NCBI GenBank assembly: GCA_001643675.2
Contig: LSRY02000021.1
Location: forward strand, 1,343,047 to 1,407,046
Reading direction: 5' to 3'
DNA length: 64,000 nucleotides
From: Monocercomonoides exilis PA203
Taxonomy: Eukaryota; Protista; Preaxostyla
Part shown: positions 5,998-36,874 of the stretch, piece after piece
Position numbering within the stretch: position 1 is the stretch's first letter
Layout: each line of letters starts with the position of its first letter
The notes under the pieces: model-generated
The model's database searches: none
Seen by the model: the letters and a program-made list of their open reading frames with translations, nothing else
Told to the model about the DNA's origin: nothing
Made by a program: the position numbers and the translations under genes

Positions 5998-6489
5998 TAA
6001 AGCTATTTATTATTTTCACAACAGCCTTGAAATGGATCGAAGCTTCTGTCAAAGAACTGGTGAAAAGAAAAGAAAAGAAAGGAGAGAAATGGAAAGAATT
6101 CTGCGTATTTGTTGATTGCCATGAATAAAAAAATAAAATAAAATAAAATAATAAATATTTTTGCAGCATCTGCGCAGCTGCACCCGATCAAAAACGAAAG
6201 TCTGGCCAGCAAAACAAGATTACAAAACATACGAAAAGGCACGGTGATTGTGAGATCACACATTGCTTGGATGGAGGTGCGCAGAAGCGAAGTGGCAATG
6301 CTGCTGGCTTGGAAACGCAACACAAACACCAAAAACTTGAATAGCTGAGAATGCTGCAAAAGCAATTGTCATTGATATTTCTTTCTTTTTTTTCTTTCTC
6401 CCCTTTTTTCTTCATTGCGCGATGCAAGCCAGACGGTGGGTGGTGCACAGGCACACAGACACACAGGCTCAAATGCTGGAGGGAGCCAG

Positions 6490-9400: not shown

Positions 9401-12400
9401 GCCTGCACATGCCTCACTCCGTGTGACACGCTTCGACAAGGATTGTCCTGCTTCCCACACTGGTTGCTGTCTTCAGACTCCATCGACACAAACACCTGCG
9501 GCGTGTACAGAAATGTGATCAGCGGGATGAGATCGATGTCTGAATGTGCTGAGTCGCTCCCACAGATCGATGTGTTCATGCGCAGCGAGGGCTGCGAAAA
9601 GTCAAGAGCGAAAAGTGTTTCGTTGATCTGCTCACCGATCGAATGGCAGTTGATAAACACATCCTTCCCCATGAATGCACTGTTCATCATGAATTGAACA
9701 CTCGCAACGTGAAGAAGAAGCGGTTTGGAAGGGGTTTGAAAGGGAGCATCTGGATCGCAAAAGTCCAGCATCATCCCGCCTCCTCTCCCTGTGCTCTCAG
9801 AACAAGCACACAACACAAATGTGCAGTTTTTCACTCCCAGGCTCGACTCCTCATTCTTCATGTGCATCATCAGCCCTCCTCCTCTGTTGCTTTGCCGGCT
9901 GAGGCAGTTCCAGAACGTGCAGTTCTCCATTCCACACTTCAATCCAGCAAACTCATCCACACCCAAAAACACTGATCCTTCCTCAGTTCTCGACACATTC
10001 TCGACTGTGACAGATGTCATGTTCATTGATGGGCAATCCACTGGCAAATCGGGTGAATCTCCTAAAGCCAACTGATTTGAATGGAGTCCAGTGGGGAAAA
10101 CTGATATGAAACTGTCAGAAGAAACAGACGAATTGATGAACGATGTGTTGTGCATGTGCGCTGAATGGAAATTGGCTGACAGTCGCAGAAAAGGATTTGC
10201 CAGAGACAAAGTCGCAAGTGCACAGTGCTCCAGGGAGACATCCCCTTCCGCAATGTCAAGCACACACAAGGAAGAAGAAGAAGGAGACAAGGTGTCAGAT
10301 GGAATGAACCTGCAAAGAGAGAAAGACACCGAATACACAGAGCGGATGAATGATTTGTGGAACTCATATCTGCTCGGAAGATCGATTATTAGGTTTGAAA
10401 AGGAAGCATTCACCGAGTTGGAGATCAGCGAGCCATCATCCGAGGAATCTCCATCACCAGATACGAACAAGTGCACAGCCTCATCACCTCCTTCAACTGA
10501 AATCAAAGGCCGGTTTTCATCAGACGGTTTGGAAGGCAGCAAGGATACTGAATGTTTGAGTGAAGCTGATCCTTCCACTTTGATGATCGATTTCTCCAAA
10601 CCAACTGGAGAGAATCGCATTTTGATCATGTGGTCGATCGAGGAGCATGGCGCTTCTGAATATCCACATCCACTGAAGCCTCCTCCTTTCTCTTTCGAAA
10701 CAAACCCTTTCCCACTCCAATTTGACCACAAATACACAACAAGCGGGATCTCATATTCTTCTCCTGTTGTCATCCCTTCCCATCCACACAACTCATCCAG
10801 TGATTCCAACTCCTCTGAACTCATCTCCCATTTCAAATGATCCTTGTTCACAACTTCCCTCAAATCCCATCCTGAAACAAACAGATTCTTCCCTTTCCAG
10901 GCATTGCATCCCTCAAATGTCATTCCTTCCATCACAAATTTCTCTATTTCCTCTGGCAATGCAACAAACATTCCTCCTCCCATTCCCTTTCCTCCATCCT
11001 CAATATCCACTGACGGAACTTCACATTCAGACAAATTCACATTTTTCATTTCCAAACTCCCTCCACTTCCAATTAATATCATCATCCCTCCTCCTCTCAG
11101 TCCTTCTTCGTTTTTGCACTTTGATGATATGTTCGTGTTTTTGATCGATATGGTTCCTCCCCCACTCGTTTCCACTTTCACGCATCCTCCACTTCCTCCC
11201 TCGTTTGCCATCTCTGTCAATGTGCATCCCTCAACTGCCACTCGTGATGCTCCGTTCACATTGATTGGCGAAAGCTCAGCGAAAGTGATATCCTCAGAAA
11301 CAACCAATCCTGTGAGCTCCAATTCACCTCCACTCACATGAATTAACGAAAATGCCACAGAGCTCGCAAGAGTGTCAGCTGAAAATACAATCGAAATATT
11401 GCTCAAAGAGAGAAAGATTGATGACTGAATAATCGAAGATATTGAGGAAGGAAGAACACGAGGAAGAGCAAAAGAGAGAAAAGACAGAGAAAAGCTGCCA
11501 GAGCACTGAATAACATTGTGGCAGTCAGTGGAGATATTGTCAGTCAAGCCAACATTCACCAAGGGATATTGGCTCGAAGAAGATGATGCAGATGAAGAAG
11601 AAATTGATATTTGAGATGTTTGAAACAACGGCACAACAAACGGATTCTTGATCGATGCTGATGATATCACTTCCATCGCATTCACAAGCTCATTCACTCG
11701 CTCACGAACACAGAAGTCGATTGTTGAACAGCAGAAAACGGAATATCCGCAATGCGAATGATCTGCACCACTCCTTTCGTCAACTGATATGGGAGATTCA
11801 AAATCACACAAATACACACACAGCGGAATAACTGGCAACGATGTCCCATCCTCGCATCCACACAACTTCTCTTCATTATTCATGCAGTTTCCATCTTTGA
11901 AGAATCCAAAGGATGCTTGATCAATTATCTCTTCCAACAAAAGCCCGCTTCCACACTGAACAAACACATCACTTCCATGAAAAGCTCTGTTTGGGTTTTC
12001 TTCAGAAAATATCACAGATTCATAAATGGTGAAATCCGATTCAGTCGAATCAACATTTATGAACAACCCTCCTCCTCTCCCCTTTTCCTCAAGACTTCCT
12101 GCACAACATCCCTCAAACATTGTTGTTCCATTCACAATCAACTCTCCTTTCCATTCTCCTCTCATCCCCAGACCACCACCATCTTTTCCTGCTGACACAT
12201 TCTCAAAATGGCAGTTTTCAACAACAACACTCCCAGAGGATGCATCATTTCTCTCAATTATTCCTCCACTTCCTGATTCCCTTTGAATCGATGTGATGTT
12301 TGTGTTCACCACGTGCAACACCGATCCAGACTGATTCACATTGAATGAAATCAAACTGTCAGAAATGAAATTCATGTCAGAAATTCCAACTCCTGACAAT

Positions 12401-14343
12401 TCCACATTTCCTCCAAATATCTGCATGAAAGACACCTCAAGCAGCAATTTACTGTCAACTGATGATATTTCGCATTCCTCCATTGTCAATGATCCATCGC
12501 CATCCATCACCACAAATGGCTTGCTTGTCCCACTCTCTGCATCCCCTTGCAGCATTGTCACTTTCTGAACACAAAAGGTTCCAGATGAAATTTGAAAAAC
12601 TGATTCAAGCGATGATGCTGATTGCACAACACATTCATTCTTTGACAATCCACAAACGCTGAATTCATTGGATGAAATTGATATTTGTTCTTCTTTGAAC
12701 ACACTTGGTCGCAGGATGAGAGTTTTGTTCGAATTGCTTGTTGATCTTCCGAGCGAATATTTGATAGAGCGACAAAAAGGGGCAAAACCACACTGCTCAT
12801 GATCAATGCCAACTGAATAGTCAGCTGTTATTTGATAATTATTCTCATTATTGGTCATCCACGAACTCAGATCTGATATATCAGTGCAAGTGTAATCACC
12901 GTTTTTGCATCTTGTGATTCTCGGGGAAGCACTTGAAGAATAGCAATCAGTAATGTTGTTTTCATCAATCGTCATCCACTGATGATAACATCCAATGTGA
13001 ATATCATGTCCGTAAGCATTATTTTTTGCTGTATTGTTATGGAAAAGACAATATTTAATGTTTATTGAAGGATTATTAAGTTCTTCTTCTTCTGCGAAGA
13101 ATATACAAGGAGCATAATTCCCACTTTTGCAATTCTGCATCGAACAATTTGAAATCAATATAAATGTGCTTACGCGCCATATATGAGTAACTGCTGAATA
13201 TGCTTCTGAGCTTGCATTGTCGAAAACACATGAAACAACGATGCATGGATTCTTATTGCATGCAGCCCAATAAAAACATGTTTTGCTGTTTGAAGAACAA
13301 TTGATCATCGAAGTCACATTTATCACTCCAGAATCAATATCCCCACATTGAAATCCTCCTGTTTCTCCTGGAGACGAACATTTGCACACATAACAATTTT
13401 CAGAAACAAATATCCCATTTGAATGATACATAGCAACAGCACCACAACCGATTTTTGAAGAGCATTCCAAGAATGAACAACGGTGAAGTATTATTGATGC
13501 ATTTCCCTCTGCTTGCAAGGCGCCACCAGCTTCATCACTCTGAACATTGAATGTGCCATCGTCAAACACATTTTCTCCTTCTGTGAAAATTTGTCTTTTG
13601 TTATAAGTTGTGAAGCATTTCAAAAACGAACAATTTCCACTTCGAAAAGAGATCATCGCAGGCGAAAGAATGCCTCCAGAATATGGACTTTCACAACCAA
13701 TCATCTCCGTTCTTTCCACCAGGACTCGGTCAGAGCATCCATTTCCATTGTCGCACTTTTTCATTGATTTTGGCAAAGTGATATTTTCGAACAAAGAATC
13801 CGATACAGATATTGATGAAAGACAACTTGAAGAAAGAAATGGCTCATTTCCATGAACTTCAAATGATGAAATCCTTGAAGAAGACAAGCACAATTCACCA
13901 CAATGATGAAGAACTTCCTTTGAACGATGTGCAATCAAAGACGATAATTGGCGATCATGAACCACAAAATTGATTGAAATATTGCTGAGACATATTCGGC
14001 CTGCAGAACAGCCAAGCAGATTTTTTGATTGTGGATGGACTGAAAACGAACAACAGCAAATATCCAGTCTCGAATGTGAATCAACTGATGCAAAATACTT
14101 CTCCATGTTCATGAAATATGAAAGTGTAGACAAGTTAATTGTTGAATTCTGGACAACAAAAAATGAATGATCATTTTCCGCTTCACCTTGCATGCTCTTT
14201 TCTTTGTTTGTCTGCTCAAATGATAATCCTTGATTATCTGAACTCAAAATTGTTGTTGAACAACAACAAAATTCAATTCCATCAATGTTGTTTCCAGAAA
14301 CCAACAAACAAAATAAGAGGCACCCTATAATGAGCAAATTCAT
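6490..14343 (-). CDS. Large single-pass surface receptor-like protein (2617 aa): signal peptide, Cys/Gly-rich beta-helix-like ectodomain with GGA/GGG repeats, TM, C-terminal pseudokinase C-lobe
   Basis: Intronless ORF with a hydrophobic N-terminus, repeated GGAL/GGGL/GGGM motifs and CG....PC.SI modules. TM segment IWPIIVIIMAVILVIVLIVSIVVTIRWRK. The tail RWKAPELL...VVFSIGMMVWECLTLQIPF...RPTL matches kinase subdomains VIII-XI (TK/TKL-like). Confidence 0.9.
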   Translation of the reverse strand: MNLLIIGCLLFCLLVSGNNIDGIEFCCCSTTILSSDNQGLSFEQTNKEKSMQGEAENDHSFFVVQNSTINLSTLSYFMNMEKYFASVDSHSRLDICCCSFSVHPQSKNLLGCSAGRICLSNISINFVVHDRQLSSLIAHRSKEVLHHCGELCLSSSRISSFEVHGNEPFLSSSCLSSISVSDSLFENITLPKSMKKCDNGNGCSDRVLVERTEMIGCESPYSGGILSPAMISFRSGNCSFLKCFTTYNKRQIFTEGENVFDDGTFNVQSDEAGGALQAEGNASIILHRCSFLECSSKIGCGAVAMYHSNGIFVSENCYVCKCSSPGETGGFQCGDIDSGVINVTSMINCSSNSKTCFYWAACNKNPCIVVSCVFDNASSEAYSAVTHIWRVSTFILISNCSMQNCKSGNYAPCIFFAEEEELNNPSINIKYCLFHNNTAKNNAYGHDIHIGCYHQWMTIDENNITDCYSSSASPRITRCKNGDYTCTDISDLSSWMTNNENNYQITADYSVGIDHEQCGFAPFCRSIKYSLGRSTSNSNKTLILRPSVFKEEQISISSNEFSVCGLSKNECVVQSASSLESVFQISSGTFCVQKVTMLQGDAESGTSKPFVVMDGDGSLTMEECEISSVDSKLLLEVSFMQIFGGNVELSGVGISDMNFISDSLISFNVNQSGSVLHVVNTNITSIQRESGSGGIIERNDASSGSVVVENCHFENVSAGKDGGGLGMRGEWKGELIVNGTTMFEGCCAGSLEEKGRGGGLFINVDSTESDFTIYESVIFSEENPNRAFHGSDVFVQCGSGLLLEEIIDQASFGFFKDGNCMNNEEKLCGCEDGTSLPVIPLCVYLCDFESPISVDERSGADHSHCGYSVFCCSTIDFCVRERVNELVNAMEVISSASIKNPFVVPLFQTSQISISSSSASSSSSQYPLVNVGLTDNISTDCHNVIQCSGSFSLSFLSFALPRVLPSSISSIIQSSIFLSLSNISIVFSADTLASSVAFSLIHVSGGELELTGLVVSEDITFAELSPINVNGASRVAVEGCTLTEMANEGGSGGCVKVETSGGGTISIKNTNISSKCKNEEGLRGGGMMILIGSGGSLEMKNVNLSECEVPSVDIEDGGKGMGGGMFVALPEEIEKFVMEGMTFEGCNAWKGKNLFVSGWDLREVVNKDHLKWEMSSEELESLDELCGWEGMTTGEEYEIPLVVYLWSNWSGKGFVSKEKGGGFSGCGYSEAPCSSIDHMIKMRFSPVGLEKSIIKVEGSASLKHSVSLLPSKPSDENRPLISVEGGDEAVHLFVSGDGDSSDDGSLISNSVNASFSNLIIDLPSRYEFHKSFIRSVYSVSFSLCRFIPSDTLSPSSSSLCVLDIAEGDVSLEHCALATLSLANPFLRLSANFHSAHMHNTSFINSSVSSDSFISVFPTGLHSNQLALGDSPDLPVDCPSMNMTSVTVENVSRTEEGSVFLGVDEFAGLKCGMENCTFWNCLSRQSNRGGGLMMHMKNEESSLGVKNCTFVLCACSESTGRGGGMMLDFCDPDAPFQTPSKPLLLHVASVQFMMNSAFMGKDVFINCHSIGEQINETLFALDFSQPSLRMNTSICGSDSAHSDIDLIPLITFLYTPQVFVSMESEDSNQCGKQDNPCRSVSHGVRHVQAGLFNAICVDSSSVVAEPTVVSDLTLKSITKHQSAIHFNSSIEEESEGSWIMLFENECLVEDCLFSFDEHFSAEHTAIMKQLNGSLAFSGCTLQSSSVESTLNSSVIVVEGGVFEMEKSSICVMGTAQPLFLFKGGSAATLNQIEISTIKTTATAMIVESSASVNIMQLAASDIRLCGENFISLAKGKNQHVNEKDAGERVVLQMGISSFSNITSSSSSSSNSHVVESACEKTRSQLLNCSFERCFTPSEKGSLVEISSGASLSLQSCELIGCEDEHQSEKNGADEDVCKWTGSVVDVCEGLLEMKDTSITNSSKGGLSISGGSAVIESCLFENNSKRIERYRSARRNVFCTGSGTLNVVDLKGGDGWERNTSLWILNEGCKLLGIAAERSSEFFIPTLKSVETTQKEDTVELTFRGTLLLPCNLGFQIVSKINNVSSIETHAFAEDEFVSEEEVQGKIGSSLVSSAPTEAEVAVCILFGNVSNPSSTESFVLKNKSESEPKGDEKIVEGGKKEKSIWPIIVIIMAVILVIVLIVSIVVTIRWRKVKNEAKDLREIVNDTVRKDPKLIEMVTMEMSPEEQWRRAEREAEKKNEERMKKRVYEKSLGHSESSEHLLSESGSTEYILGRDSDKIPEWMLEKVDEKEEEEEETRKRTPSPSISSTSTTDTSDTESTFVRGEDLCPTTSSMSNLVDAMACSSPHEKLIVDLRDSMFMLLHGRNKTKEMAIGTLQEREQTAAQILFWVANLALHSFDEMNNPLQSLANLSPHIVLFSEHMVICIALHSDCSSDDSDSSSISSTTTIATSSSDCSCANGNGRGSPPPSSAFEDEDDFRKECMRWKAPELLSGAKGHATKKTVVFSIGMMVWECLTLQIPFGEYEAEAAGQKIANGERPTLCSCEGISLGQTACAAMSQQPHSRPTLQELKKAFIALFPPASAMLTASDAIDLVDATGIPPPSALPASAVSETLTSF

Positions 14344-17300
14344 AGAATGTTGAGAATCAATAATTTTATTATGGTTCTGAAAGAATTATCTCAATTATTG
14401 TTTGTTTCAATAAAAAAGTTTTTCTCTTTCAAATCGAGAATTTGACAATCTCAGCCCAATTAGATCATGAGCAGTTGTAATCAAAGAAAAAGATAGATGA
14501 ATATTTGATTGTGGAAGAATAGATTGTGAAATTACCAATTCATCAATGATCCAAATGAACAAATTCCAATCAATTCCTTCTGCACGAATCTGTATCTGTG
14601 AATTAACTAATAAATAATAGAATTCCGTTCAAAGAGCACTTCAAATTAATCTCTGTTGTGGTGGTTGAAAAACATTCCAAAAAAAAATCAGAAGATAGAT
14701 TTTTTGTTTGTGAATATCTTCCGATGTTTCATTCATCAGTTTTATTGGTTCTTGAAAACGTTATCAACAGAATTTCACATGCGTTTGAACCACATCTCCA
14801 AAAAAGTCGTTGAAGAAGAAAAGTTGAAAGAACATGGTAGCCGAATAAATGAATTAGAGAAAATGCGCTCACAAATGGAATACATCAGAAGTTCAGTGAA
14901 TTCCTCATATGAGTTCAATTCGAGGTATTTTTTAATATTCATTAATATTTGCATTTCAAGAATATATTTTTCTGTTTTGATCATTCCTCATTATGAAAGT
15001 GTTGAATTTGAAAAATATTGAAATTGCCAAATGTGAGCAGCTGAAGTTTGTCCTGTTTTAATTAAGCTGAAAACATCTTCTTTTGTTGATTGGGCATCTT
15101 CACAATCATGGCTTTGTGTGCTGGATGCATTCACCAACGGTCTTGTGAAAATGAAAATTAAGATTGTCATTCTTTTCAATGTGCAAACTGTTCTCCAACA
15201 CCTGTGGTTATCGTGTGTTGAGATAATGAAAGAGCTTGATGATGTCATTTTCATGTGATGTGCAATGTGTTCTGTTTTTTTGAGTGTCAATGAATGAGAA
15301 CTTACAAATGCGAACTCTTTGCAAATCCATCAAATGAACTGCGGAAATGATGCGAAATCAGATGCACGACACGCATTTATTCGGACCAAGTGTGTGGTTT
15401 GAACCAATCGCTTTTGTTATTCCTTGACGCCCAAATTTCACAGCGAGCACAGTCAAGTGTTTTTCACAACCATATTCTATTATTAGATGAATTGCACAAT
15501 TTTTGTATAATTGTGAAATTATTGAAATAATTTGAAATTCGTTTATGTTATTTTGAAATAATCAAGTAATTTTGAAATTTTTCAGAAAAATTGAAAATAA
15601 GGCAGTTATTTTAAGTTCCACCAACAAATTTCAAGTTTTATAAAATTGTGGGAAGATCTCATATTTTTCACAGTATTTTTTGCACATTCGAAAATAGCTG
15701 TTTATTTGTCACAACTGTTATTAAATATTTAATATTCAATTATCAGAACATTTACCAACAAATTTTTCGAAATAAATCCTTTTTCGTATTTTTGTGAAAA
15801 TCGTTAAGAAAAAAAATATTATTCAGCGTTTTCTACGATTATTGAAATGTTTCCATGAACAATAAATGATTGTTCTTATTTAAAACATTTCAAAAATTTA
15901 ATATTAAATGGTTAAATATTACTGATTTGCAAAAATCAACAGAATACATCAAATATCAAAAAAGAGAGCTATTTAAATTTAAGAACATTTCAAATATTGA
16001 TGTTATGCACAATAATGAATATTTCCTGGAGAAAAAAATGTCACTGTTTCTTGTAAAACAAGGCAAAAAAACTGAAAAAGAAAATCAAATTAGATTTCGA
16101 TAATGCATGCTCATTATACAATTCTATTAACAATAAAAACACTATTCAAAGCTTTTTGCAAATCTTATTGTTTCTTCGTTTTCCTCTTATTCTACTTCTC
16201 AATATATCATTTTTTTAATCTTCAAAACTTATTTGATCCATTTCTCTTGTTTATTTCAATGTGAATTTCATCGCCTCCTTTCTGCCTTCCAAAAAAATTC
16301 ATCAAAGCCTAATCGTCTATTCTGCTTCCACTTAAATAACTCTGCAAACTCCATTCTATAAAAAACAGTCAAAGAAGAAGATTCCTTCAGAAGAATCACT
16401 TCCCATCCCTTGTTGATGTATTGCCTTCTTCTTCTCTCCATTTCCTCCAAAACAACATCACATCAACGCATCCACTTCCCAATCTGACCATTCTCCCAAC
16501 CAAAAAAAATCTATTTTCATTCTTTTTCTATCTCCTTTGAAAGGTACCTTCCCATAGTCAGCCCCTCATCTCGTTCCATCCCTGTCGCACCTCTGTCTCC
16601 ACACCCCCAATGCAAAGTGCTGCGTTCAATGTTCCTTCTTCCTCTCTTCCTCCACCTCAGCCTCCATCCCCAACCCAGAAAATGAGAGGCGCGTCTAAAC
16701 CGTTCATCTAATAAAAAAAAAAATCAAAATAAAAAATTCTTCCTCACATTTTTCCCCCTTCAACCCCACTTCTCTTTCTTATTAAACACTCACTCACAAA
16801 TACTCTTTCTCTTGCTCCACCTCATTCGCCTCCTCCCTTTCTCTGCATTTAAAAAATAACATCTCCTCCCCATTCCTTTTCCATATCTCTCCATTTCCGA
16901 TCCAACTCTAATCCTCCCCTCCAATAAATATACTCCATTCACTCCGCCCATCTTCTTCCCTTCTTATCTTCCATCTCATCTTACCTCCTCAACATCAAAT
17001 TCCATTTCTCCAATAATTAACACAACACCCACTCCTTTCAAATAACATAAATCTCAAAAACAACTATACAGCTTCATTTCAATCCATCTCCAACACATAC
17101 ATTTCCACAACAAAACTCCACAAAAATGCCTGTTTCTCTCCCCAAAAAACCCCTCACACTCTCCATTCAACTTTAAAACCCTGTTTCTCCCTAACCACTC
17201 AAATCCTTCCTAAAGCACAATAAATCCATTCTTTTGTAATCACGTTGTCTTCATATGTCATTTCAGCCACAGCGCATCGTGTTGTGCCCCTTTTCTGAAT

Positions 17301-24149: not shown

Positions 24150-25539
24150 ATAAATTTTCGCAGATGCGAAACCGCGAAATATAATGAGGCTATGAGAAAT
24201 AGGAGAAACGTGTATTTCAGCATAATAATTGCAGAGAGACAAACCGCCTTTGATCGAATGAATTAAAACAGAGAGAGCTGAGTTTGCAATGAGAGAAAGA
24301 TAGAGAAAGAATTTGTGAGAAATTGCGAACTGATAATTCGAAGAAAGACAACTTATTATCGTGAGATAGATGCAGACAAATAAACCGCTAAATATCGCTG
24401 GAATGATTGAGAAGTAATTTCCGCGAAATATCGCAAGGAGAAAATATAGCATGAGACAGCGAAAGACCGCGAGAGGAGGATACAGAAAGAAGCTGCACAG
24501 CACAGAGTGATGAAAAGAGAAGAAGACTCCACATATCTGCTTGGATTGATGCAATGGAGCAAGATTTCTTGCGAGGAGAAATTCGGAGGAGAAATAAAAA
24601 CTGGAGTCAACAAGGATTGAAGAGTTTCTGGGATGGATTTACAATTTTGAAAAGATGGAAGTGACGCTCCAAGAGAGGAAGAGAGTGCTGCTCCTGGAGG
24701 TTGTGCGAACCTGGATAGTGTACGAAATGAGGAGGAAGAGTCTAAAGACAAGAGATTAAGCAGCACTCCTCGCGAGGCTGAATTTTGTGAGGCTGAAGCA
24801 TCCACCAGCGAGCTTGTGGATGAAACGCATGCAATATGTGCTGAGGCAGGCAATAGCCCGCGGGGTCTGGAATGGAACGGTGATAGTCAGCCCAATGATA
24901 CTGGGAGAATTAACACACTGGAGAAAGATACTACAAGAAAACAGACCAAGGAGTCTGAAGAGAAGGAACAGACCGGCAGTACTAACGACGGACGCCTCAG
25001 AGCTGGGATGGGGTGCAGTATTAACAATATCGAGGGAGAACAAAGAGGAGAAGATATATGTCCACGGGAGTTGGACCCTCCAGGAGAGTGCGTTAGCGAT
25101 AAACGAAAAGGAGTCCAGAGCAGTGTTGAGGACTTTAGAAAGGAAGGGAGCATGGCTGCAACAACAGAAGATAGAATATATTCGTCTGAGGACAAACAAT
25201 ATGTCCACGAGATGGACAATACAGAAGAAGAGGGGAGCGCCATCGCTCATTCCAACACTGAGAGCATTAGAGAAGAAACTGAACAGCCTGGACATCGCAA
25301 TACAGACGGAACATCTCCCGGGAGAGCAGAACACGGAAGCAGATGCACTCAGCCGGATGGCGAGAAAGCCGGACAACGCACCGAGGGGGGAGAAAGTCGC
25401 AGAGATATTACAAATAGTCGCGCCGAGAACACTTGATACAATTTCAGAACAGACTACGCCTGTGCCCTGCGGAACTACTTGGAGACTATCCTCTCTGAGA
25501 GGGAGGAGAGGGAGAGAGAAACGCAAGGAAACGAGATAG
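24150..25539 (+). pseudogene. DIRS reverse transcriptase-RNase H remnant
   Basis: STRIEEFLGWIYNFEKMEVTL...RD*AALLARLNF is in frame with ORF 24787-25539. That ORF contains VLTTDASELGWGAVL, INEKESRAV, LRTNN and HLPGEQNTEADALSR (DIRS1 RNase H motifs). The RT active-site region is degenerate and frameshifted; the start coordinate is approximate. Confidence 0.85.
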
Positions 25540-26003: not shown

Positions 26004-26254
26004 ATGTGGGATTTTACAACAATTACAAAAGTGGAAGAAACCACATATAACTCAACAGACCCACAAGCACTCCAGAGGAAAGCCCTCATCCTCACTATTA
26101 TTTTTGGAACGTCAGGGCCAGCTGAGCTGGAGAGATCGAGAAAGGAGTGTTCTATATTGAAAGAAGATAAGGTAATAATAGAAATGCAGATATTGATGAC
26201 AGTAAGGAAGACTGTAAAAATCGATATTAACAAACATCCAAACCCACTCATAGA
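26004..26254 (+). pseudogene. DIRS tyrosine recombinase, 5' part (interrupted by Merlin)
   Basis: WD...ALQRKALILTIIFGTSGPAELERS. The frame continues at 36875 as (KHPNPLI)DAEEALQRKL once the insertion and one TSD copy are removed. Confidence 0.65.
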
Positions 26255-29200
26255 GGCATAGGTCTAAATGCGCTCCTTTTGCAAATTGCGTTTTTAGGCA
26301 TTAAAATTATGATGAATAAATAGGTAATAATTATTTAAAAACTTTTTATGGACCGATTTTTTGAAAAAAATTTTTCTTGTTGAAAAAAATGATTTTTGAA
26401 AAATGACCCACAAAAACATGAATTTCAAAGAAAAATATTCAAATTTAAAAGAAAATGTGATTTTTGGACATCCAATGTGTTTTTATTATAATATAAATAT
26501 ATTTTATTTGTTAATTTTCATCATTAACAATAATGGTCATAAAAAATTTTTTTATTAAATATCTTTGATCTAACCCACAATAAAATTTTTTATGTCTAGA
26601 AAAGTTGAATATGCTGTTTAAGATGAAATAGAACTCAATAGTTTGCCATCATTTCATTTTTATATATAAAATTTAACATATTATTATATGTGCACTTGTT
26701 TTATATTGAAAACAGCTTTTTTTCACAGTCACATTAAAGTGTGCCTTTTTGCTTGAATATTCTAAACTACCTAATATTAGTTCATTTACGTTCGCAAAGG
26801 AACGCAAAAGGTTATAAATGACTCTTTAAATAACAATATTATTTATTTTGCTTTAATATTTCATATATTTTCTTGTTCTTTTATATTTCTATGTTTTTTT
26901 TGAATTAGATAAGATCATTGCATTATTAAATGAAACTTTTTACCCAGATAAACTTCAATTTCCCAATGCAATATTATATTGAGTTATTAAAACAATGGAC
27001 TTTATTAAAGTTTGTCGTTTGTATGTTTTTAAAAATATAAAGAATGAGATAGATTTAGCTTTTCTAGTGGATCTGATGTTGAGAGCTGTAGATGTGAGGA
27101 TGAGCTATGCCAAACAACGCGGAAGCGGATGGAAAACATGAAAAAGGAGATTGGAATGAAAACAATTCAAATTGAAGGATCAACAATTATTCTAGATTCA
27201 TTCAATGTTACCAATTATCAGATCAAAAAGGATACGAAGATGGGAGAAGAGAATGCGAAAGCAACATTGAATGTTAAAGAGGCAATTGAAAGTCAACTGG
27301 AGTATTTTATGGGAAATTATGCTCGGTTTAAATTGGCAAATATCAGACTGCAACTGTCATCTGGGTTTGGCAACTCGGCCAAATCGATTATTTCGAACAG
27401 AAAAGGTGAGTTGGTTATTAGTGAATGTTTATTCCATTCAGCAGCAAGAGTGAACAATGGATTTGACTGTGTGTTTGTGGATGTGATTGGAGGCAATGTG
27501 GAAGTGAATGATCTGTCGATTGAATCATGCAATGTTGGAAACAGTATTTTTGCAATTAACAATGCTGGAGCTGTTTGCCATTTGGTGAATGTTCGAGTGG
27601 AATCATTGAATGAAAGTGGAGGATGTATTTTATCAATCAAGGAATCTGAACCGGGATTGAAGATTAATGAAGGAGAACTGATTGTTGATAAATTTGTGAT
27701 GGAGGGTGGAGTGACGCTGACGATGAACGGTAAATCACCAATAGCAATAACCAATGAAGAGAAGTTGGACATAAAGAACGGCAGAGTGAGTGGAGTGACG
27801 GTGGAAGGTGGGAGCGGAGAAGGAGGAGGATGCATCGGTGCAGAGATACAAGCAGAAGGAAGCGCAGTAGTGAATAACTGCAGTTTTTCATCAATATGTA
27901 CAGGTGGAAGTGGGATGAAAGGAGGAGGGATGAAGATATCAGTGGGGAAGGGAGGGAGTTTGGAAATGAAAGGAGTGAAATATTCAGGATGCGAAGTGCC
28001 AAGAGAGGATGTTGAGGAAGGAGGAAGAGGAATGGGAGGAGAGATGTTTGTGAAGCTGGCAGATGAGATGGGAACATTTGTTCTTGAAGGGATGGAATTT
28101 GAGGGGTGTGATGGGTGGAAAGGGAAGAATTTGTTTGTGTCAGGATGGGATCTGAGAGAGATTGTGAGTGAGGAGCATCTGAAATGGGGATTGAGTGCAA
28201 ATGATAAGAATTCCTTGGATGAGCTGTGTGGATGGGAGAGGAAGACAACAGGAGATGGATATGTGATTCCATTGGTTGTGTATTTGTGGGATAACTGGAG
28301 CGGGAATGGGTTTGTTTCGAAAGATAATGGAGGAGACTTCAGTGGGTGTGGGTATTCCGAGGCACCATGTTTATCGATTGATCACTTGATATCACTGAGA
28401 TATTCGATACTTGGAAAAGGCGAATCCCAGATCTGGATTGGGGGTTCAGGGTTGCTGAGCCGTTCCATATCATTTTCATTTTCTTCTTCTTCTTCATCAA
28501 TTGAAGAATCACCAAAAGTGGAGGTTGAAGGGACAAAGAAAGGGACAAGTGTGACGATCAGTGATGAAGATGGGAATGATTTGGATGATGGTTCAATGAT
28601 CTCATCGAATGTGAGTCTGTCGTTTGTGAATGTTTCATTCACCAAACCCAGCATCACCACCCATCATGAAATGTTGATTGAATCCTCTGGAACAAACACA
28701 TTATTGTCAGTTTCAGATTGTTCATTTGGCCCAGGGAGAGGGGTGGCAGAGAGTTTTGGATATTGTGTGATGAGAGTGAATGGAGGCAGAGTTATTGCTC
28801 AAGAGTGTTTGTTGGATGCGGTTGACAAATTGAAAGGGTTCATCGCTTTCAGTGCAACAGCAACAAGGGAGGTGATTGTGGAGGATATGAACATCTCAAA
28901 TGTTGGTGTGAAGGAAAGAAGTCTGATTTCGATGTTTGAGGATGAGCAGATGAATGGGATGAAAGCCAAAAGAGGGATGAATGGAGGGGAAAACAGTCAT
29001 TCAAACAACGAAAATGTGGTGATAAAAGTGAATGGGTCTTCGTTCACAAACATCACAAATGGAGAAAACAGAGCAGGGATGCTGAGTGTGGATACATTTG
29101 AGAGTGCGATGGAGTGTGTGTTGGAGGGGTGTTCGGTTTCGAGTTGCAGGAGTGAAATGAGCGAGGAAGGAGGAGGGATGAAAGTGTGTCTGAAGAGAGG

Positions 29201-30224
29201 AGAATCAGAAGTGAGAGTTGTTTGGTGTTCGCTGGGGATGTGTTCGTGCTCTGGGGTGAAGGGGAGAGGAGGAGGGATGATGGTTGATGCACTTGACCCG
29301 AATGAGGGTGGAACCAGTGCACTTGGGCCTGTTGGGATAAGGATGGAGAATGTGAGGTTTTGGGGGAACGAGGCGTTTGTGGAGAAGGATGTGTTCATCA
29401 AGTGCCACTCGATTGGGAAACAGATCAATAAAACGCTGTTTGTGCTGGACTTCGAGCAGGATGCACTGAAGGGGAAGAACTCGATGTGTGGGAGCAATGG
29501 AGAAGGGAAAGTTGATATTGATTTGATACCGCTGATCACATTCTTTCACTCAGCTCAGGTGTTTGTGAGTGTAAATGGAAGCGATAGCAGACAGTGTGGA
29601 GCATAGAATTATCCGTGCCAGAGCATAAGTTGTGGTTTTAAACATATTGAGAGAAGCGTTGCAAATATGATTTTAATTAATGGAGAATGCATGATTTGTG
29701 GAGGGTGTGAGATAGGAGATTTGAATGTGAAGTCGGTGAAGAAGGCAAAGTCCACAATCCATTTTGAGGGGAAGATGGGGGACAGAGGAGAGGAGAGGAG
29801 CATGATGGTGTTTGTGAATGAGTGTGTTGTGGAGAGGTGCAAGTTTGTGTTTGGAGAGGCATTTGAAGGGGTTGAAGAGAGTGTGGGAAAAGATCTCATC
29901 AGTAGTCGTGAAAATGATGTGGAGGTGAGCGCGTTAATTTTATTTGGGAATGCAGAATTTCCTTCTTCAGCACAGCCATTTGTTCTGAAGAATACAAGTG
30001 AAACAAAGGGAAATGGAAATGAAATAATGTCAAAAGGAGAGAATAAATTTGAATGGAGTTTATTTGCCTTTATTGAATGTATTGTGATTGGTGTGATTCT
30101 GTTATTTGTGATTGTTGCAGTAGTTGTGCTAATGAGAAAGAAATTAAGGGAAGCAGAAAAGGGAGTTGAGAAAGAAAGATTTGAAAACGAGCAGATAATG
30201 GGAAAGATAGAGAGGAGAAGAAGG
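26255..30224 (+). repeat. Left TIR of the Merlin element (3970 bp)
   Basis: Reverse complement of 32897-36866. Coordinate sum is 63121 at both ends and at all paired ORFs (no net indel), and paired ORF translations are identical. Substitutions seen at 26362, 26411 and 26417. Confidence 0.95.
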
Positions 30225-30407
30225 GAAAGTGATGGAGAGAGCTTTGAGATGAGTGAAATGCCATCAGCATTGCTGGGGGGAATGACGAGTCAAATTTTAC
30301 TTTTCATAGACAACGATGAAGATCTTCCATATCCTCCTTTGATGAGCGATAAAGATATTTTTTTTAATAAAAATAATTTTCCAGATTTCGAATCATTACG
30401 ATTTTAA
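27129..30407 (+). pseudogene. Captured, internally deleted surface-receptor gene (825 aa + in-frame TAG + remainder with TM), left arm
   Basis: Closely similar to the 2617-aa receptor (WKGKNLFVSGWDLRE, LDELCGWE, IPLVVYLW, FSGCGYSEAPC, IDLIPLITF). TAG at 29604-29606 aligns with Gln (QCGA*NYPC vs QCGKQDNPC). Has a TM but lacks the kinase tail. Confidence 0.85.
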
Positions 30408-30528
30408 TTTATTTGAATGGTTGTCTGACTTTTTTCGTTTTGTTATTGAATTTATCACTGAATGTATTTATGGAGTGCTTTATTGTTTATCTATACGTAC
30501 ACGTTAATAAAGTGATATGAATGATGTG

Positions 30529-31188
30529 TTAAAGAGAAATTGGAAATTGCTCAGTTCCTTTATTCAATTCCTTTGTTCTACTTCGAAGGATTTTTTGGTT
30601 TTTGATTGATTGCAACTTATTTTTTTCTTTTTTCATCATCTCGCTAATTTTCTCCTCTTTTTTCTCACAAAATCGATCCGATTCAAACTCCAAATTGGAT
30701 AGATGTTGAGTATAGTCATTTTTGCAAAATCTGCCATTGCTTGACCTTTTTCTTTTAATTTTTCTTTTCCGGGGTTTTGAATCATTCATGTCAGGTTCGA
30801 AGAAATTTTCATAATCGTCATCTATATTAAATTCATCATTGTCATCCCTTTCGTTGTTTTCCTCATTATCTTGAAGCTTTGGAATGATGACTCTGCTTGA
30901 GCCTGATTCATCATTTTTTTCTTGTTTTTTGTTTTGTGTATTTTCATTTTCCTTATCATTTCTCTCCTTTTCTTCATCTTCTTTATCATCGAATAAATTG
31001 GAATGATTATCGTCGTTTGATATGTCATCTTTAGCATCATTGCGTTCATCATCAGATTCGTCGATTAATCTTCTTTTCCCCCTTTCAGTAATCTCTTTTG
31101 ATTGGATTTTTTGTATTTTTTTCTTCTCCTTCAAGAAAGAATCATATTCATTTTCATCAAGCAATATTGCATCCTTTTGATTTTTCAT
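30529..31188 (-). CDS. Acidic/basic low-complexity ORF, probably the C-terminal tail of the transposase (same frame, beyond one TGA)
   Basis: ...SSYIL*KEERMKNQKD... with only 4 codons between the stop and this ATG. Contains NLS-like KPRKRKIKRKR. Confidence 0.6.
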   Translation of the reverse strand: MKNQKDAILLDENEYDSFLKEKKKIQKIQSKEITERGKRRLIDESDDERNDAKDDISNDDNHSNLFDDKEDEEKERNDKENENTQNKKQEKNDESGSSRVIIPKLQDNEENNERDDNDEFNIDDDYENFFEPDMNDSKPRKRKIKRKRSSNGRFCKNDYTQHLSNLEFESDRFCEKKEEKISEMMKKEKNKLQSIKNQKILRSRTKELNKGTEQFPISL

Positions 31189-31200
31189 TCTTTCTTCTTT

Positions 31201-32244
31201 TCAAAGAATGTAGGATGATAATTTGAACTTTCTTTCCTTCGTTAATGCAGTTTTTGTTTTCATTTCACATTTATAATAAGACTCCATGTAATTGTCAAAG
31301 TCTCTTTTCTTTATTTTTGAAATAATGTCAAGAAAACTGTAAATGGTGCCTTTGTTATTGAATCTGTATTGAAATTCAAAAGCATATTCTTTTGTTTTTT
31401 CATAAGTTCTTCCTCTTAATGGAAGATGACGCTTCAAATGTGACCACATACTCTCAATGGTTTGTGAATGTATTGTTTTGTCAGCTGGATCAGAAAAATG
31501 CTCTGAATGATTTATACTGTAATGCGTATATCCACATTGTTTAATTTCACTATAAGCAGACCATTTATCGCTATAGATTTCTGCTGAGATGTCAATGTTT
31601 TTCTTAATGAAATATAACAATGTTTCTTCTGTTCTATCTGGGACAAATTCAAGTTTTAATTTTTGCGGCTTTCCTTCCACTTTTCTTTCAACTGCTCCCC
31701 ACAGCCACTGCTGTTCTTTTACTCTCCCTACTCCATTTTTTCTTTTATGTATCAACGTTTCATCCATTTCCACTTTTCTATTCTTTCCAATTTTTTCCAA
31801 ATCAGAAGATTCAATATAATAACAAATGTTACGTAATCTTTTAAAGAATTTCAAAACTGTGCTTTTTGAAATTTCTGTTTCAGTAACAACTTCATCAACT
31901 GAATGCTTGTACCAAAAATGATAAAACAGTGACATCGTGCTAAATGGTGAGATATTGAAATCAGAAAACAAAGATTCATAATTCCAACTAAATGCTTTTC
32001 CACATGATGAACATTTGAAGATGTAATAATCGCTTTCAGGCTTTTGAATGATGAGATTCATATTTTTCTCGCAATCCCAACACGTGATCGACTTTCGAAT
32101 GCATCCCATGGTCGATGAAATGTCAAGAGCGAGTTTATTTTTTTTATTTGACATCATTAGAAATTGTGTAAATGTTATTTTCTGAATATCTTCTTTGTTA
32201 TATTGAGTCTCCATGTCACAGAAATTGAAAATTTTATTTTTCAA
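31201..32244 (-). CDS. Merlin (IS1595/ISXO2-like) DDE transposase
   Basis: Zn-ribbon CWDC...CSSC, an HTH-like segment, VEMDET (D), VPDRT, IYSDKWSAY (D), INHSEHF and HSQTIESMWSHLK (E). First ATG at 32214. Confidence 0.93.
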   Translation of the reverse strand: MKNKIFNFCDMETQYNKEDIQKITFTQFLMMSNKKNKLALDISSTMGCIRKSITCWDCEKNMNLIIQKPESDYYIFKCSSCGKAFSWNYESLFSDFNISPFSTMSLFYHFWYKHSVDEVVTETEISKSTVLKFFKRLRNICYYIESSDLEKIGKNRKVEMDETLIHKRKNGVGRVKEQQWLWGAVERKVEGKPQKLKLEFVPDRTEETLLYFIKKNIDISAEIYSDKWSAYSEIKQCGYTHYSINHSEHFSDPADKTIHSQTIESMWSHLKRHLPLRGRTYEKTKEYAFEFQYRFNNKGTIYSFLDIISKIKKRDFDNYMESYYKCEMKTKTALTKERKFKLSSYIL

Positions 32245-32539
32245 TTCAAATTATGATAGTCAAGTAATGGGAAGTTTTTTTATTACAAATATCGAAACTG
32301 TTCTGAAAATATTAATTTTTCATTTTAAATATTAATTTTCAATTTATTATTTTCTTTATTAAATTATTAATAAAATTTATATGCTTTCAAAATAATACAA
32401 AATTAAATGTGAAATCATTTAAATAATCAAGTATAGTTATTGCGTTGCGATAAACAACAAGAAAAATTGTCAATTGTGATTTCTGCAAAGTGAAAAAGTC
32501 TCAGTAAATAATTTTAAACGTTTATGACTTTCATCTATA

Positions 32540-32894
32540 TATTTTCTTCACTCATTGTTATTCCACCTTCTGGTGAATTAGAGATTGCTGTGTATTTCAT
32601 CAAAACAGAACTTTTCACAGCATCCACAAGAGATCCATCTTATCTGCAAATCTCTTCGCCTCTTCTATTATCCTCATTCACATGCTTTCCTTCTTTTTCA
32701 TCTCCTTCCTCTCCATCAATCACACACAATCTAACTCTCATATCTTCATACTCACATATCCTCATCATCTTTCCTTTCTTGTTTGTGCTCCGACATTTCG
32801 CAAAAGGGTAGTTCAGCAAACTCAACCCCCTTTCAGTTCCATCCATCTTCATCAATCTTCCTTCAATATGTACTGAGAAATTCTCAAAATTCAC
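32540..32894 (-). pseudogene. Additional surface-receptor ectodomain fragment in the Merlin spacer
   Basis: EEICR*DGSLVDAVKSSVLMKYTAISNSPEGGITMS matches EDVCKWTGSVVDVCEGLLEMKDTSITNSSKGGLSIS of the 2617-aa protein. Confidence 0.7.
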
Positions 32895-35800
32895 TTCCTT
32901 CTTCTCCTCTCTATCTTTCCCATTATCTGCTCGTTTTCAAATCTTTCTTTCTCAACTCCCTTTTCTGCTTCCCTTAATTTCTTTCTCATTAGCACAACTA
33001 CTGCAACAATCACAAATAACAGAATCACACCAATCACAATACATTCAATAAAGGCAAATAAACTCCATTCAAATTTATTCTCTCCTTTTGACATTATTTC
33101 ATTTCCATTTCCCTTTGTTTCACTTGTATTCTTCAGAACAAATGGCTGTGCTGAAGAAGGAAATTCTGCATTCCCAAATAAAATTAACGCGCTCACCTCC
33201 ACATCATTTTCACGACTACTGATGAGATCTTTTCCCACACTCTCTTCAACCCCTTCAAATGCCTCTCCAAACACAAACTTGCACCTCTCCACAACACACT
33301 CATTCACAAACACCATCATGCTCCTCTCCTCTCCTCTGTCCCCCATCTTCCCCTCAAAATGGATTGTGGACTTTGCCTTCTTCACCGACTTCACATTCAA
33401 ATCTCCTATCTCACACCCTCCACAAATCATGCATTCTCCATTAATTAAAATCATATTTGCAACGCTTCTCTCAATATGTTTAAAACCACAACTTATGCTC
33501 TGGCACGGATAATTCTATGCTCCACACTGTCTGCTATCGCTTCCATTTACACTCACAAACACCTGAGCTGAGTGAAAGAATGTGATCAGCGGTATCAAAT
33601 CAATATCAACTTTCCCTTCTCCATTGCTCCCACACATCGAGTTCTTCCCCTTCAGTGCATCCTGCTCGAAGTCCAGCACAAACAGCGTTTTATTGATCTG
33701 TTTCCCAATCGAGTGGCACTTGATGAACACATCCTTCTCCACAAACGCCTCGTTCCCCCAAAACCTCACATTCTCCATCCTTATCCCAACAGGCCCAAGT
33801 GCACTGGTTCCACCCTCATTCGGGTCAAGTGCATCAACCATCATCCCTCCTCCTCTCCCCTTCACCCCAGAGCACGAACACATCCCCAGCGAACACCAAA
33901 CAACTCTCACTTCTGATTCTCCTCTCTTCAGACACACTTTCATCCCTCCTCCTTCCTCGCTCATTTCACTCCTGCAACTCGAAACCGAACACCCCTCCAA
34001 CACACACTCCATCGCACTCTCAAATGTATCCACACTCAGCATCCCTGCTCTGTTTTCTCCATTTGTGATGTTTGTGAACGAAGACCCATTCACTTTTATC
34101 ACCACATTTTCGTTGTTTGAATGACTGTTTTCCCCTCCATTCATCCCTCTTTTGGCTTTCATCCCATTCATCTGCTCATCCTCAAACATCGAAATCAGAC
34201 TTCTTTCCTTCACACCAACATTTGAGATGTTCATATCCTCCACAATCACCTCCCTTGTTGCTGTTGCACTGAAAGCGATGAACCCTTTCAATTTGTCAAC
34301 CGCATCCAACAAACACTCTTGAGCAATAACTCTGCCTCCATTCACTCTCATCACACAATATCCAAAACTCTCTGCCACCCCTCTCCCTGGGCCAAATGAA
34401 CAATCTGAAACTGACAATAATGTGTTTGTTCCAGAGGATTCAATCAACATTTCATGATGGGTGGTGATGCTGGGTTTGGTGAATGAAACATTCACAAACG
34501 ACAGACTCACATTCGATGAGATCATTGAACCATCATCCAAATCATTCCCATCTTCATCACTGATCGTCACACTTGTCCCTTTCTTTGTCCCTTCAACCTC
34601 CACTTTTGGTGATTCTTCAATTGATGAAGAAGAAGAAGAAAATGAAAATGATATGGAACGGCTCAGCAACCCTGAACCCCCAATCCAGATCTGGGATTCG
34701 CCTTTTCCAAGTATCGAATATCTCAGTGATATCAAGTGATCAATCGATAAACATGGTGCCTCGGAATACCCACACCCACTGAAGTCTCCTCCATTATCTT
34801 TCGAAACAAACCCATTCCCGCTCCAGTTATCCCACAAATACACAACCAATGGAATCACATATCCATCTCCTGTTGTCTTCCTCTCCCATCCACACAGCTC
34901 ATCCAAGGAATTCTTATCATTTGCACTCAATCCCCATTTCAGATGCTCCTCACTCACAATCTCTCTCAGATCCCATCCTGACACAAACAAATTCTTCCCT
35001 TTCCACCCATCACACCCCTCAAATTCCATCCCTTCAAGAACAAATGTTCCCATCTCATCTGCCAGCTTCACAAACATCTCTCCTCCCATTCCTCTTCCTC
35101 CTTCCTCAACATCCTCTCTTGGCACTTCGCATCCTGAATATTTCACTCCTTTCATTTCCAAACTCCCTCCCTTCCCCACTGATATCTTCATCCCTCCTCC
35201 TTTCATCCCACTTCCACCTGTACATATTGATGAAAAACTGCAGTTATTCACTACTGCGCTTCCTTCTGCTTGTATCTCTGCACCGATGCATCCTCCTCCT
35301 TCTCCGCTCCCACCTTCCACCGTCACTCCACTCACTCTGCCGTTCTTTATGTCCAACTTCTCTTCATTGGTTATTGCTATTGGTGATTTACCGTTCATCG
35401 TCAGCGTCACTCCACCCTCCATCACAAATTTATCAACAATCAGTTCTCCTTCATTAATCTTCAATCCCGGTTCAGATTCCTTGATTGATAAAATACATCC
35501 TCCACTTTCATTCAATGATTCCACTCGAACATTCACCAAATGGCAAACAGCTCCAGCATTGTTAATTGCAAAAATACTGTTTCCAACATTGCATGATTCA
35601 ATCGACAGATCATTCACTTCCACATTGCCTCCAATCACATCCACAAACACACAGTCAAATCCATTGTTCACTCTTGCTGCTGAATGGAATAAACATTCAC
35701 TAATAACCAACTCACCTTTTCTGTTCGAAATAATCGATTTGGCCGAGTTGCCAAACCCAGATGACAGTTGCAGTCTGATATTTGCCAATTTAAACCGAGC

Positions 35801-35992
35801 ATAATTTCCCATAAAATACTCCAGTTGACTTTCAATTGCCTCTTTAACATTCAATGTTGCTTTCGCATTCTCTTCTCCCATCTTCGTATCCTTTTTGATC
35901 TGATAATTGGTAACATTGAATGAATCTAGAATAATTGTTGATCCTTCAATTTGAATTGTTTTCATTCCAATCTCCTTTTTCATGTTTTCCAT
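32891..35992 (-). pseudogene. Captured surface-receptor gene, right-arm copy (same TAG at 33515-33517)
   Basis: Translation identical to the left-arm copy up to the TIR inner end (KIERRRR). Confidence 0.85.
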
Positions 35993-36866
35993 CCGCTTCC
36001 GCGTTGTTTGGCATAGCTCATCCTCACATCTACAGCTCTCAACATCAGATCCACTAGAAAAGCTAAATCTATCTCATTCTTTATATTTTTAAAAACATAC
36101 AAACGACAAACTTTAATAAAGTCCATTGTTTTAATAACTCAATATAATATTGCATTGGGAAATTGAAGTTTATCTGGGTAAAAAGTTTCATTTAATAATG
36201 CAATGATCTTATCTAATTCAAAAAAAACATAGAAATATAAAAGAACAAGAAAATATATGAAATATTAAAGCAAAATAAATAATATTGTTATTTAAAGAGT
36301 CATTTATAACCTTTTGCGTTCCTTTGCGAACGTAAATGAACTAATATTAGGTAGTTTAGAATATTCAAGCAAAAAGGCACACTTTAATGTGACTGTGAAA
36401 AAAAGCTGTTTTCAATATAAAACAAGTGCACATATAATAATATGTTAAATTTTATATATAAAAATGAAATGATGGCAAACTATTGAGTTCTATTTCATCT
36501 TAAACAGCATATTCAACTTTTCTAGACATAAAAAATTTTATTGTGGGTTAGATCAAAGATATTTAATAAAAAAATTTTTTATGACCATTATTGTTAATGA
36601 TGAAAATTAACAAATAAAATATATTTATATTATAATAAAAACACATTGGATGTCCAAAAATCACATTTTCTTTTAAATTTGAATATTTTTCTTTGAAATT
36701 CATATTTTTATGGGTCATTTTTCAAAAATCATTTTTTTCAACAAGAAAAATTTTTTTCGAAAAATCGGTCCATAAAAAGTTTTTAAATAATTATTACCTA
36801 TTTATTCATCATAATTTTAATGCCTAAAAACGCAATTTGCAAAAGGAGCGCATTTAGACCTATGCC
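32897..36866 (-). repeat. Right TIR of the Merlin element (3970 bp)
   Basis: Reverse complement of 26255-30224. Confidence 0.95.
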
Positions 36867-36874
36867 CTCATAGA

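Follow-up and report, generated by a model that had tools for sequence, protein, structure and literature searches.

A Merlin-superfamily transposon copy with giant inverted arms and receptor-derived cargo in Monocercomonoides exilis

The window analyzed here, a stretch of 64,000 nt from the genome of Monocercomonoides exilis PA203, contains at positions 26255-36866 a transposon-like unit of 10,612 bp, in which two inverted arms of 3,970 nt enclose a spacer of 2,672 bp (30225-32896) with a transposase gene. We consider it highly probable that this unit is a copy of a cut-and-paste transposon of the Merlin superfamily (IS1595-like DDE transposase), with an inherited giant-armed build, movement as a whole unit, upkeep of the arms, and a cargo derived from the host. 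The genome searched for relatives comprises 82,301,135 bases in 101 contigs. A total of 35 loci were fetched for comparison, whereas the sizes of copies on contigs C32, C15, C57, C91, C7, and others come from paired termini only. The features of the locus are as follows.

24760-25536, forward strand: RNase H-like domain of the decayed DIRS-like target retroelement (PF17917, 4.2e-9)
26247-26254, no strand: left copy of the target site duplication (TSD), CTCATAGA, 8 bp; paralogous empty sites overlap by 8 bp
26255-30224, forward strand: left arm, a giant terminal inverted repeat (TIR) of 3,970 nt, 100% complementary to 32897-36866
26255-26284, forward strand: terminal 30-nt motif GGCATAGGT..AA..GCG..C.TTTTGCAA, mirrored at 36837-36866 and common to both subfamilies described below
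26255-27128, forward strand: AT-rich element-specific leader, ~0.87 kb
27048-30407, forward strand: left cargo frame, a truncated receptor derivative; first ATG at 27129, TAG at 29604-29606, last 183 nt past the arm in unique DNA
30225-30520, no strand: S1, 296 bp unique to the window copy, between the left arm and the transposase module
30529-31188, reverse strand: acidic/basic open reading frame (ORF) of 219 codons in the transposase frame, a cut-off C-terminal extension
31201-32244, reverse strand: Merlin/IS1595 transposase ORF, 347 codons; first ATG at 32212-32214, TGA stop at 31201-31203
32453-32896, reverse strand: S3, receptor "tail" that natively continues the right-arm cargo; many genomic matches with 75-91% identity
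36073 to 32894, reverse strand: right cargo frame, with the same TAG at 33515-33517
32897-36866, reverse strand: right arm (giant TIR), 3,970 nt, the complement of the left arm
36867-36874, no strand: right TSD copy, CTCATAGA, 8 bp

Both ends of the element, read inward, start with GGCATAGGTC..., and CTCATAGA adjoins each of them; the perfect 8-bp TSD, the GG-starting termini, and the two 3,970-nt arms of the original prediction are confirmed. The 600-bp left and right flanks of the unit each have approximately 40 copies in the genome. For more than 15 paralogues of the retroelement, the matches to the left flank and those to the right flank overlap by exactly 8 bp, and one aligned paralogue has a single uninterrupted CTCACAGA at the insertion site. 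The uninterrupted paralogues together with the 8-bp overlap identify the unit as a clean insertion with an 8-bp duplication. The insertion lies in the tyrosine-recombinase region of the target, which extends from ~26046 and resumes after 36874; matches to PF00589 (Phage_integrase) overlap paralogues of both flanks, and the insertion falls approximately 40% into this region. The RNase H domain, together with the Phage_integrase matches on paralogues of both flanks, supports the previously proposed DIRS-like nature of the target at the level of these two domains. The local copy of the retroelement is heavily decayed, and a Pfam scan of the flank ORFs gave no match for most of them.

The transposase ORF in the spacer matches PF12762 (DDE_Tnp_IS1595) with 83.7 bits (cut-off 27) over profile positions 16-153 of 153 and the NCBIfam model NF033547 (IS1595 family transposase) with 92.3 bits (cut-off 75), in agreement with its original description; the transposases of sister copies likewise match the IS1595 domain. 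Three blocks, EMDET, YSDKW, and TIESMW, hold the residues D161, D226, and E264, which by motif can be assigned as the DDE triad, and the N-terminus has a zinc-finger-like CxxC...CxxC arrangement. The catalytic domain of the window copy is intact, as had been proposed, but the ORF stops at a TGA ahead of an acidic tail. In the related giant copy at C13:173742-184510, this TGA is an arginine codon, and the frame reads on into the tail, of which ~160 further codons are open there and ~220 in the frame of the window copy. The transposases of the sister subfamily B are naturally short at the C-terminal tail. The only homologues retrieved with the transposase as query were two distant metagenomic sequences (34-36% identity). 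The IS1595 domain, the DDE blocks, the 8-bp TSD, and the 5'-GG termini all fit the Merlin superfamily, to which the unit had originally been assigned.

The receptor-derived frame, which points inward in each arm, is split by one TAG into 852 + 266 codons, with a transmembrane stretch near the end of the left frame. The receptor frame expected in each arm is therefore present, albeit as a truncated and TAG-interrupted mosaic derivative rather than a complete gene. The host relatives that were compared with it are single, uninterrupted ORFs of 2,621 codons (L023 60-7925, C58:590060-597925) and of at least 2,106 codons (L032 30-6350 on contig C20, open at the fetched 5' edge); both are intron-free in these stretches, and a transmembrane stretch was recognized by eye in each. 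L023, the one scanned, matches only the C-terminal lobe of the PK_Tyr_Ser-Thr kinase profile. At least 12 such receptor genes are located on contig C58 alone, and a "protein tyrosine kinase" family, which overlaps many unclassified repeats, is among the largest in this organism (M. exilis genome paper). Judged by sequence similarity, this large receptor-(pseudo)kinase family of M. exilis is the source of the cargo.

Compared with the host genes of 2,100-2,600 codons, the element cargo has a length of ~1,070-1,120 codons. It begins with ~180 element-specific N-terminal codons, which are followed by a 2.2-kb middle block, a juxtamembrane and transmembrane part, and a decayed tail. Between the middle block and the juxtamembrane part, approximately 430 codons are deleted (estimated by eye against a host gene). 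The cargo of subfamily B corresponds to the C-terminal part of the receptor, pseudokinase included. Three copies have a continuously open frame (1,071, 1,022, and 1,074 codons), whereas it is broken in other copies, and a Pfam scan found no match for the extracellular part of the cargo. A phylogenetic tree built from the 2.2-kb block places cargos and host genes among one another, with strong support. Moreover, identity to host genes is patchy along the sequence: some 300-nt segments of the window cargo are 92-96% identical to genes on contigs C58 and C70 or 87-89% to a gene on C21, with neighboring segments at ~70%, and another cargo shows 94-95% identity to a gene on C20 over 770 nt. Because of the interleaved tree and this patchwork of high and low identity, the cargo is best read as a mosaic derivative that keeps exchanging patches with its chromosomal paralogues. 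The dN/dS ratio was 0.40-0.48 in all cargo pairs; it was not used as support for selection of the cargo for the benefit of the element, since mosaic exchange with host genes can explain such a ratio.

Upstream of the cargo, the AT-rich leader has relatives across the genome (74-95% identity among the 50 matches listed of 152 candidates), and its outer 360-560 nt correspond to the TIR of non-autonomous relatives. A repeat search of the leader revealed only weak, short, AT-rich subterminal repeats and no clear arrays. The terminal 30-nt motif is a likely candidate for the end bound by the transposase. Beyond the inner end of the left arm, the segment S1 gave no other genomic match for query positions 1-296. 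It occupies the position held by the receptor tail in the giant copy at C13:173742-184510; a diverged tail was considered for S1 and ruled out, its local alignment score being at the level of shuffled sequences. The native tail, S3, has no long open frame in the window copy.

A degenerate pattern of the 30-nt terminus has 115 matches in the genome versus none in a reversed control. Pairing of plus and minus termini delimits units of ~1.7 to 20 kb, with GGCATAGG at the ends of nearly all copies. Distinct 8-bp TSDs of their own are present at 10 of the 16 copies checked (the window copy included), one of these being a 7-of-8 match. The subfamily of the window element, here called A, forms three size classes among the fetched loci. 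The class of the largest elements comprises four transposase-bearing giants, the window copy and three others. The loci referred to by position below are the following.

C13:173742-184510: subfamily A giant, transposase-bearing, arms of 4,424 nt, TSD CGAATATT
C59:411965-427696: subfamily A giant with 6,406-nt arms, each containing a transposase copy
C16:997450-1017897: subfamily A giant with 7,171-nt arms, likewise with a transposase copy in each
C11:1031666, C22:1277169, C13:1529041, C10:1237389, and C1:1850246: 1.74-kb foldbacks L011-L015
C34:479194: further 1.74-kb foldback
C25:1201151-1214079: fourth giant-armed copy of subfamily B, 12.9 kb

Identity among the subfamily A giants is 70-88%, and the nearest relatives of the window copy reach only 86-90%. 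The second class, of ~5.4 kb, has TIRs of 360-560 nt and a single cargo gene without a transposase; TSDs of their own occur among these elements, which keep a 5' remnant of the transposase and a right subterminal block that is missing from the giants. The third class consists of 1.74-kb foldbacks, formed by two 0.8-kb leaders around ~100 bp, and among the five fetched members a perfect 8-bp TSD was found in three and a 7-of-8 match in one. At least seven further loci of diverged sequence have the same build as the window element, and every transposase-bearing copy examined in subfamilies A and B has kilobase arms with receptor cargo. It had been noted beforehand that the window unit would be a one-off if all other copies had short TIRs and no cargo; the transposase-bearing copies contradict this.

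Two of these size classes contain copies with particular features. The giant at C16:997450-1017897 (L003-L005) is a 20.4-kb palindrome, each arm of which comprises the cargo and a stop-interrupted transposase, and its 6.1-kb center holds a third, more distant remnant of an IS1595-type transposase (54% identity, two stops). Among the 5.4-kb non-autonomous elements, L016 (C1:817245-822642) and L017 (C1:847013-852408) lie in opposite orientation 24 kb apart, have zero distance over the 2.2-kb core and 99.8% identity over a 557-bp block, and show a TSD, AAAGCGTT, at one and none at the other.

The movement of giant-armed units can be followed in subfamily B, the transposases of which share ~57% protein identity with those of subfamily A and the termini 23 of 30 positions. 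Its 8.2-kb elements have arms of 2.74 kb and an intact transposase at the center. Copies L027 (contig C40) and L028 (contig C13) differ in contig, flanks, and TSD (CTCCTAAC and AGAAAAAG), and yet they are 99.9% identical over 8,223 bp. With the transposase used to orient both copies, their left arms are 100% identical to each other and so are their right arms, whereas left and right arms are 97.4% identical in either copy. Since the differences between the arms are shared arm for arm, they survived transposition; the unit jumped in its entirety, with no rebuilding of one arm from the other. A similar relation holds for two 1.74-kb foldbacks (C10:1237389 and C1:1850246), which are ~98% identical arm for arm and ~90% between the arms within each copy. 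Giant-armed units of sister copies thus move whole, as read directly from the sequences of subfamily B, and from these we infer the same for the window copy; accordingly, the original claims of movement in one piece and of two receptor-gene copies delivered per jump hold for the sisters and extend to the window copy by analogy. At the sequence level, the outer 160 nt of L027 (805-964) are 79% identical to window positions 26255-26414, and the remaining leader sequence is unalignable.

The age of the palindromic build in subfamily A is indicated by the copy at C13:173742-184510 and a remnant on contig C12 (75-85% diverged), in both of which the left-arm tail meets the transposase 3' end at element positions ~4261-4267. 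This common junction implies that the palindromic build was inherited and is older than both copies.

In addition to transposition with both arms, the copies bear traces of homogenization in place. The arms of L029 are 100% alike, yet each arm of L027 and L028 matches them at only 93%. In three 1.74-kb foldbacks the arms are 99.9-100% alike within a copy versus 95-97% between copies, and identical-armed copies stand 5-25% from their relatives. Differences between the arms of the subfamily A giants are nearly all homopolymer-length indels, which are typical nanopore errors. The inner boundaries vary, with arms of 3.97, 4.42, 6.4, and 7.2 kb in the four subfamily A copies. Arms that are alike within a copy and diverged from relatives point to homogenization in place. 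The occurrence of the same TAG in both cargo frames of the window copy fits a mutation that arose once and was then copied across. The upkeep is probably due to episodic arm-to-arm gene conversion or to renewed fold-back synthesis, with drifting end points.

The following model would account for these observations. The native unit, read from the right end, comprises the terminal motif, the 0.87-kb leader, the truncated receptor gene, the tail, and the transposase, all in the same direction, and its other end is an inverted copy of the leader and cargo. The transposase would most likely bind the conserved 30-nt termini, excise everything between them, and insert it with an 8-bp staggered cut, a chemistry assumed from the superfamily, so that both arms would travel with the unit and each insertion would deliver two cargo copies. 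Because the 5.4-kb relatives keep the right subterminal block, an asymmetric ancestor with TIRs of 0.4-0.5 kb probably existed. The kilobase arms probably originated by a template switch, in the repair of a break or gap or in replication, for which such a TIR provided the homology and by which the original right subterminal region was exchanged for an inverted copy of the left half. Thereafter, the arms would have been held nearly identical by episodic conversion in place, while the inner boundary drifted. The window copy itself is probably past its prime, since both cargos contain a nonsense codon and the transposase is truncated beyond the catalytic domain.

The most serious alternative, which we regard as unlikely although it retains real weight, places the growth of the arms after the insertion and at this locus only: an asymmetric element, which had TIRs of ~0.4-0.5 kb, a single cargo gene, a transposase, and a right subterminal region of its own, would have landed here, and an inverted copy would later have taken the place of its right or left part through fold-back repair or a template switch in replication, so that the 10.6-kb unit would never have jumped. 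This would agree with the different inner boundaries of all four subfamily A giants, with the homogenization of arms in place in other copies, and with the right subterminal block, present in the 5.4-kb relatives and missing in the giants, as the trace of an asymmetric ancestor. It would also explain the left junction of the window copy, where the arm breaks abruptly inside the cargo and is followed by the 296 bp of unique S1 filler, which resembles a repair scar. On the other hand, the junction shared by the C13 giant and the C12 remnant shows a palindrome that predates these copies, no asymmetric transposase-bearing copy was seen among those examined, and giant-armed units transpose in subfamily B. 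We therefore favor an inherited giant-armed build, and consider that the window unit probably jumped with its full arms, with later extension of the arms the less likely course.

Several facts weigh against this preferred interpretation. No sibling shares the 3,970-nt arm boundary of the window copy, and the giants at C16:997450-1017897 and C59:411965-427696 have no TSD. Both the template-switch origin and the upkeep by gene conversion are deduced from patterns among the copies. Ten rounds of Pilon polishing (PMC8767320) could erase small true differences between arms, although differences of 2.6-9% survive elsewhere. Finally, the window copy has a truncated transposase ORF of putative activity.

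The polishing also bears on a second alternative, an assembly artefact, in which chimeric or palindromic nanopore reads or the assembler itself would have produced the inverted duplication and polishing would have made its arms identical. The M. exilis PA203 assembly was indeed built from nanopore reads with Canu and polished with Nanopolish in addition to Pilon (PMC8767320), and multi-mapped polishing would be expected to leave arms that are 100% identical over 3,970 nt. We nevertheless consider an artefact very improbable, given that 2.7 kb of unique, asymmetric spacer with a transposase separates the arms in place of a hairpin-tip join, that a perfect TSD stands at the outer ends of a unit whose site is empty in paralogues, and that the build recurs at the seven or more diverged loci mentioned above, including correctly resolved arms with 2.6% differences. 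A composite in the manner of Tn5 or Tn10, with two complete non-autonomous cargo elements inverted around a transposase gene and the outer ends used for movement, would draw on the 5.4-kb elements, which exist on their own with a single cargo, TIRs of 360-560 nt, and TSDs, but has almost no likelihood, as the terminal motif occurs at the two outer termini only and is missing from the inner arm ends, the arms break off within cargo or tail sequence rather than at an element end, and they do not contain the right subterminal block of the 5.4-kb elements.

Merlin elements with TIRs of 24-462 bp have been published, the TIRs being 23-29 bp long in most Monocercomonoides families, and the survey, which used a fragmented 454 assembly, counted over 100 Merlin copies for Monocercomonoides sp. 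PA203, belonging to at least 7 families (PMC8101967). The giant-armed elements share with these the DDE_Tnp_IS1595 transposase, the 8-bp TSD, the 5'-GG termini, and the host organism, but exceed the descriptive TIR range, with arms of 3,970 nt in the window copy and of 2.7-7.2 kb in other transposase-bearing copies, and have protein-coding cargo in these arms. The supplements of the survey, some of them as truncated files, contained no terminal 8-mer in the right context and none of three transposase peptides that were looked for (PMC8101967). Our literature search found no gene capture by Merlin elements, a habit known as Pack-type capture from other superfamilies, and no published description of a Merlin element with gene-bearing kilobase arms.

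The original remark that no description of this architecture was known holds for Merlin as far as the literature search went, but long TIRs as such have a precedent in Galileo, an element of the P superfamily with TIRs of 4.2-4.7 kb and identical TSDs in Drosophila willistoni (PMC4168063). In a nearly complete Galileo copy, the TIR overlaps the transposase coding region, and the copy with the longest TIRs has no transposase, its TIRs holding tandem repeats and fragments of other transposons (PMC4168063). Foldback-like elements (Galileo, FB, and Tetris) resemble the elements described here in having long TIRs that vary strongly in length between copies. The transposases of Galileo and FB, however, are of P or FB/MuDR type, and only the long-TIR habit is common to them and the IS1595-type elements of M. 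exilis; furthermore, the longest Galileo TIRs belong to a transposase-free copy, whereas here the giant-armed copies bear a transposase and their arms hold host-derived coding sequence. The long-TIR foldback build is therefore already known from Galileo, and a Merlin element with coding kilobase arms is a new variation on a known architecture. We also weighed KolobokP "composite-like" elements as a possible precedent but discarded them, since their long terminal repeats are direct.

Pack-type elements (Pack-MULE and Pack-TIR) provide another point of comparison, as they carry host gene fragments between TIRs and move them with TSDs. Their definition includes the lack of a transposase, so that the window copy falls outside it and the 5.4-kb non-autonomous relatives fall within it. 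The elements studied here differ in that the cargo is also present in autonomous copies, is duplicated inside the TIRs, and is repeatedly overwritten by host paralogues, and in that the same cargo family occurs across two subfamilies whose transposases are only 57% identical. Large inverted repeats that are kept identical by gene conversion include the plastid inverted repeat, the palindromes of Y chromosomes, and the inverted terminal repeats of poxviruses. Like them, the giant-armed elements have arms that are far more similar to each other than to those of relatives, drifting inner boundaries, and arm genes in two copies; unlike the Merlin element, these systems are not units moved by a DDE transposase.

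Merlin elements are poorly studied, and their described TIRs measure at most a few hundred bp. A Merlin lineage with autonomous copies that transpose with coding arms of 2.7-7 kb widens the size range and the cargo habits of DDE cut-and-paste elements. The family also offers a natural system for the study of arm homogenization, as each of three size classes includes both pairs that kept old arm differences through a jump and copies that were reset in place. In addition, the exchange of patches between cargo and chromosome ties transposon activity to the dynamics of a receptor-tyrosine-kinase-like family. A further proposal, to which we attach little credence, is that the kilobase gene-bearing arms are a maintained working feature rather than a repair accident, acting as donors and acceptors of conversion or as a source of double-stranded RNA. 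In the former case, transposons would help to diversify and spread the largest surface-receptor family of the organism; in the latter, read-through or convergent transcription of the inward-pointing cargos would yield multi-kilobase double-stranded RNA that regulates the element and the receptor paralogues.

A larger inverted duplication brackets the region, with arms of ~10 kb at window positions 5051-15082 and 53517-63539, approximately 38 kb apart. It consists of three collinear inverted blocks (3,715, 4,593, and 1,729 nt) that are 96-98% complementary and contain GC-rich coding sequence of receptor type. The Merlin element is located between the arms of this duplication, off center, and the end of the window is the end of contig C16.

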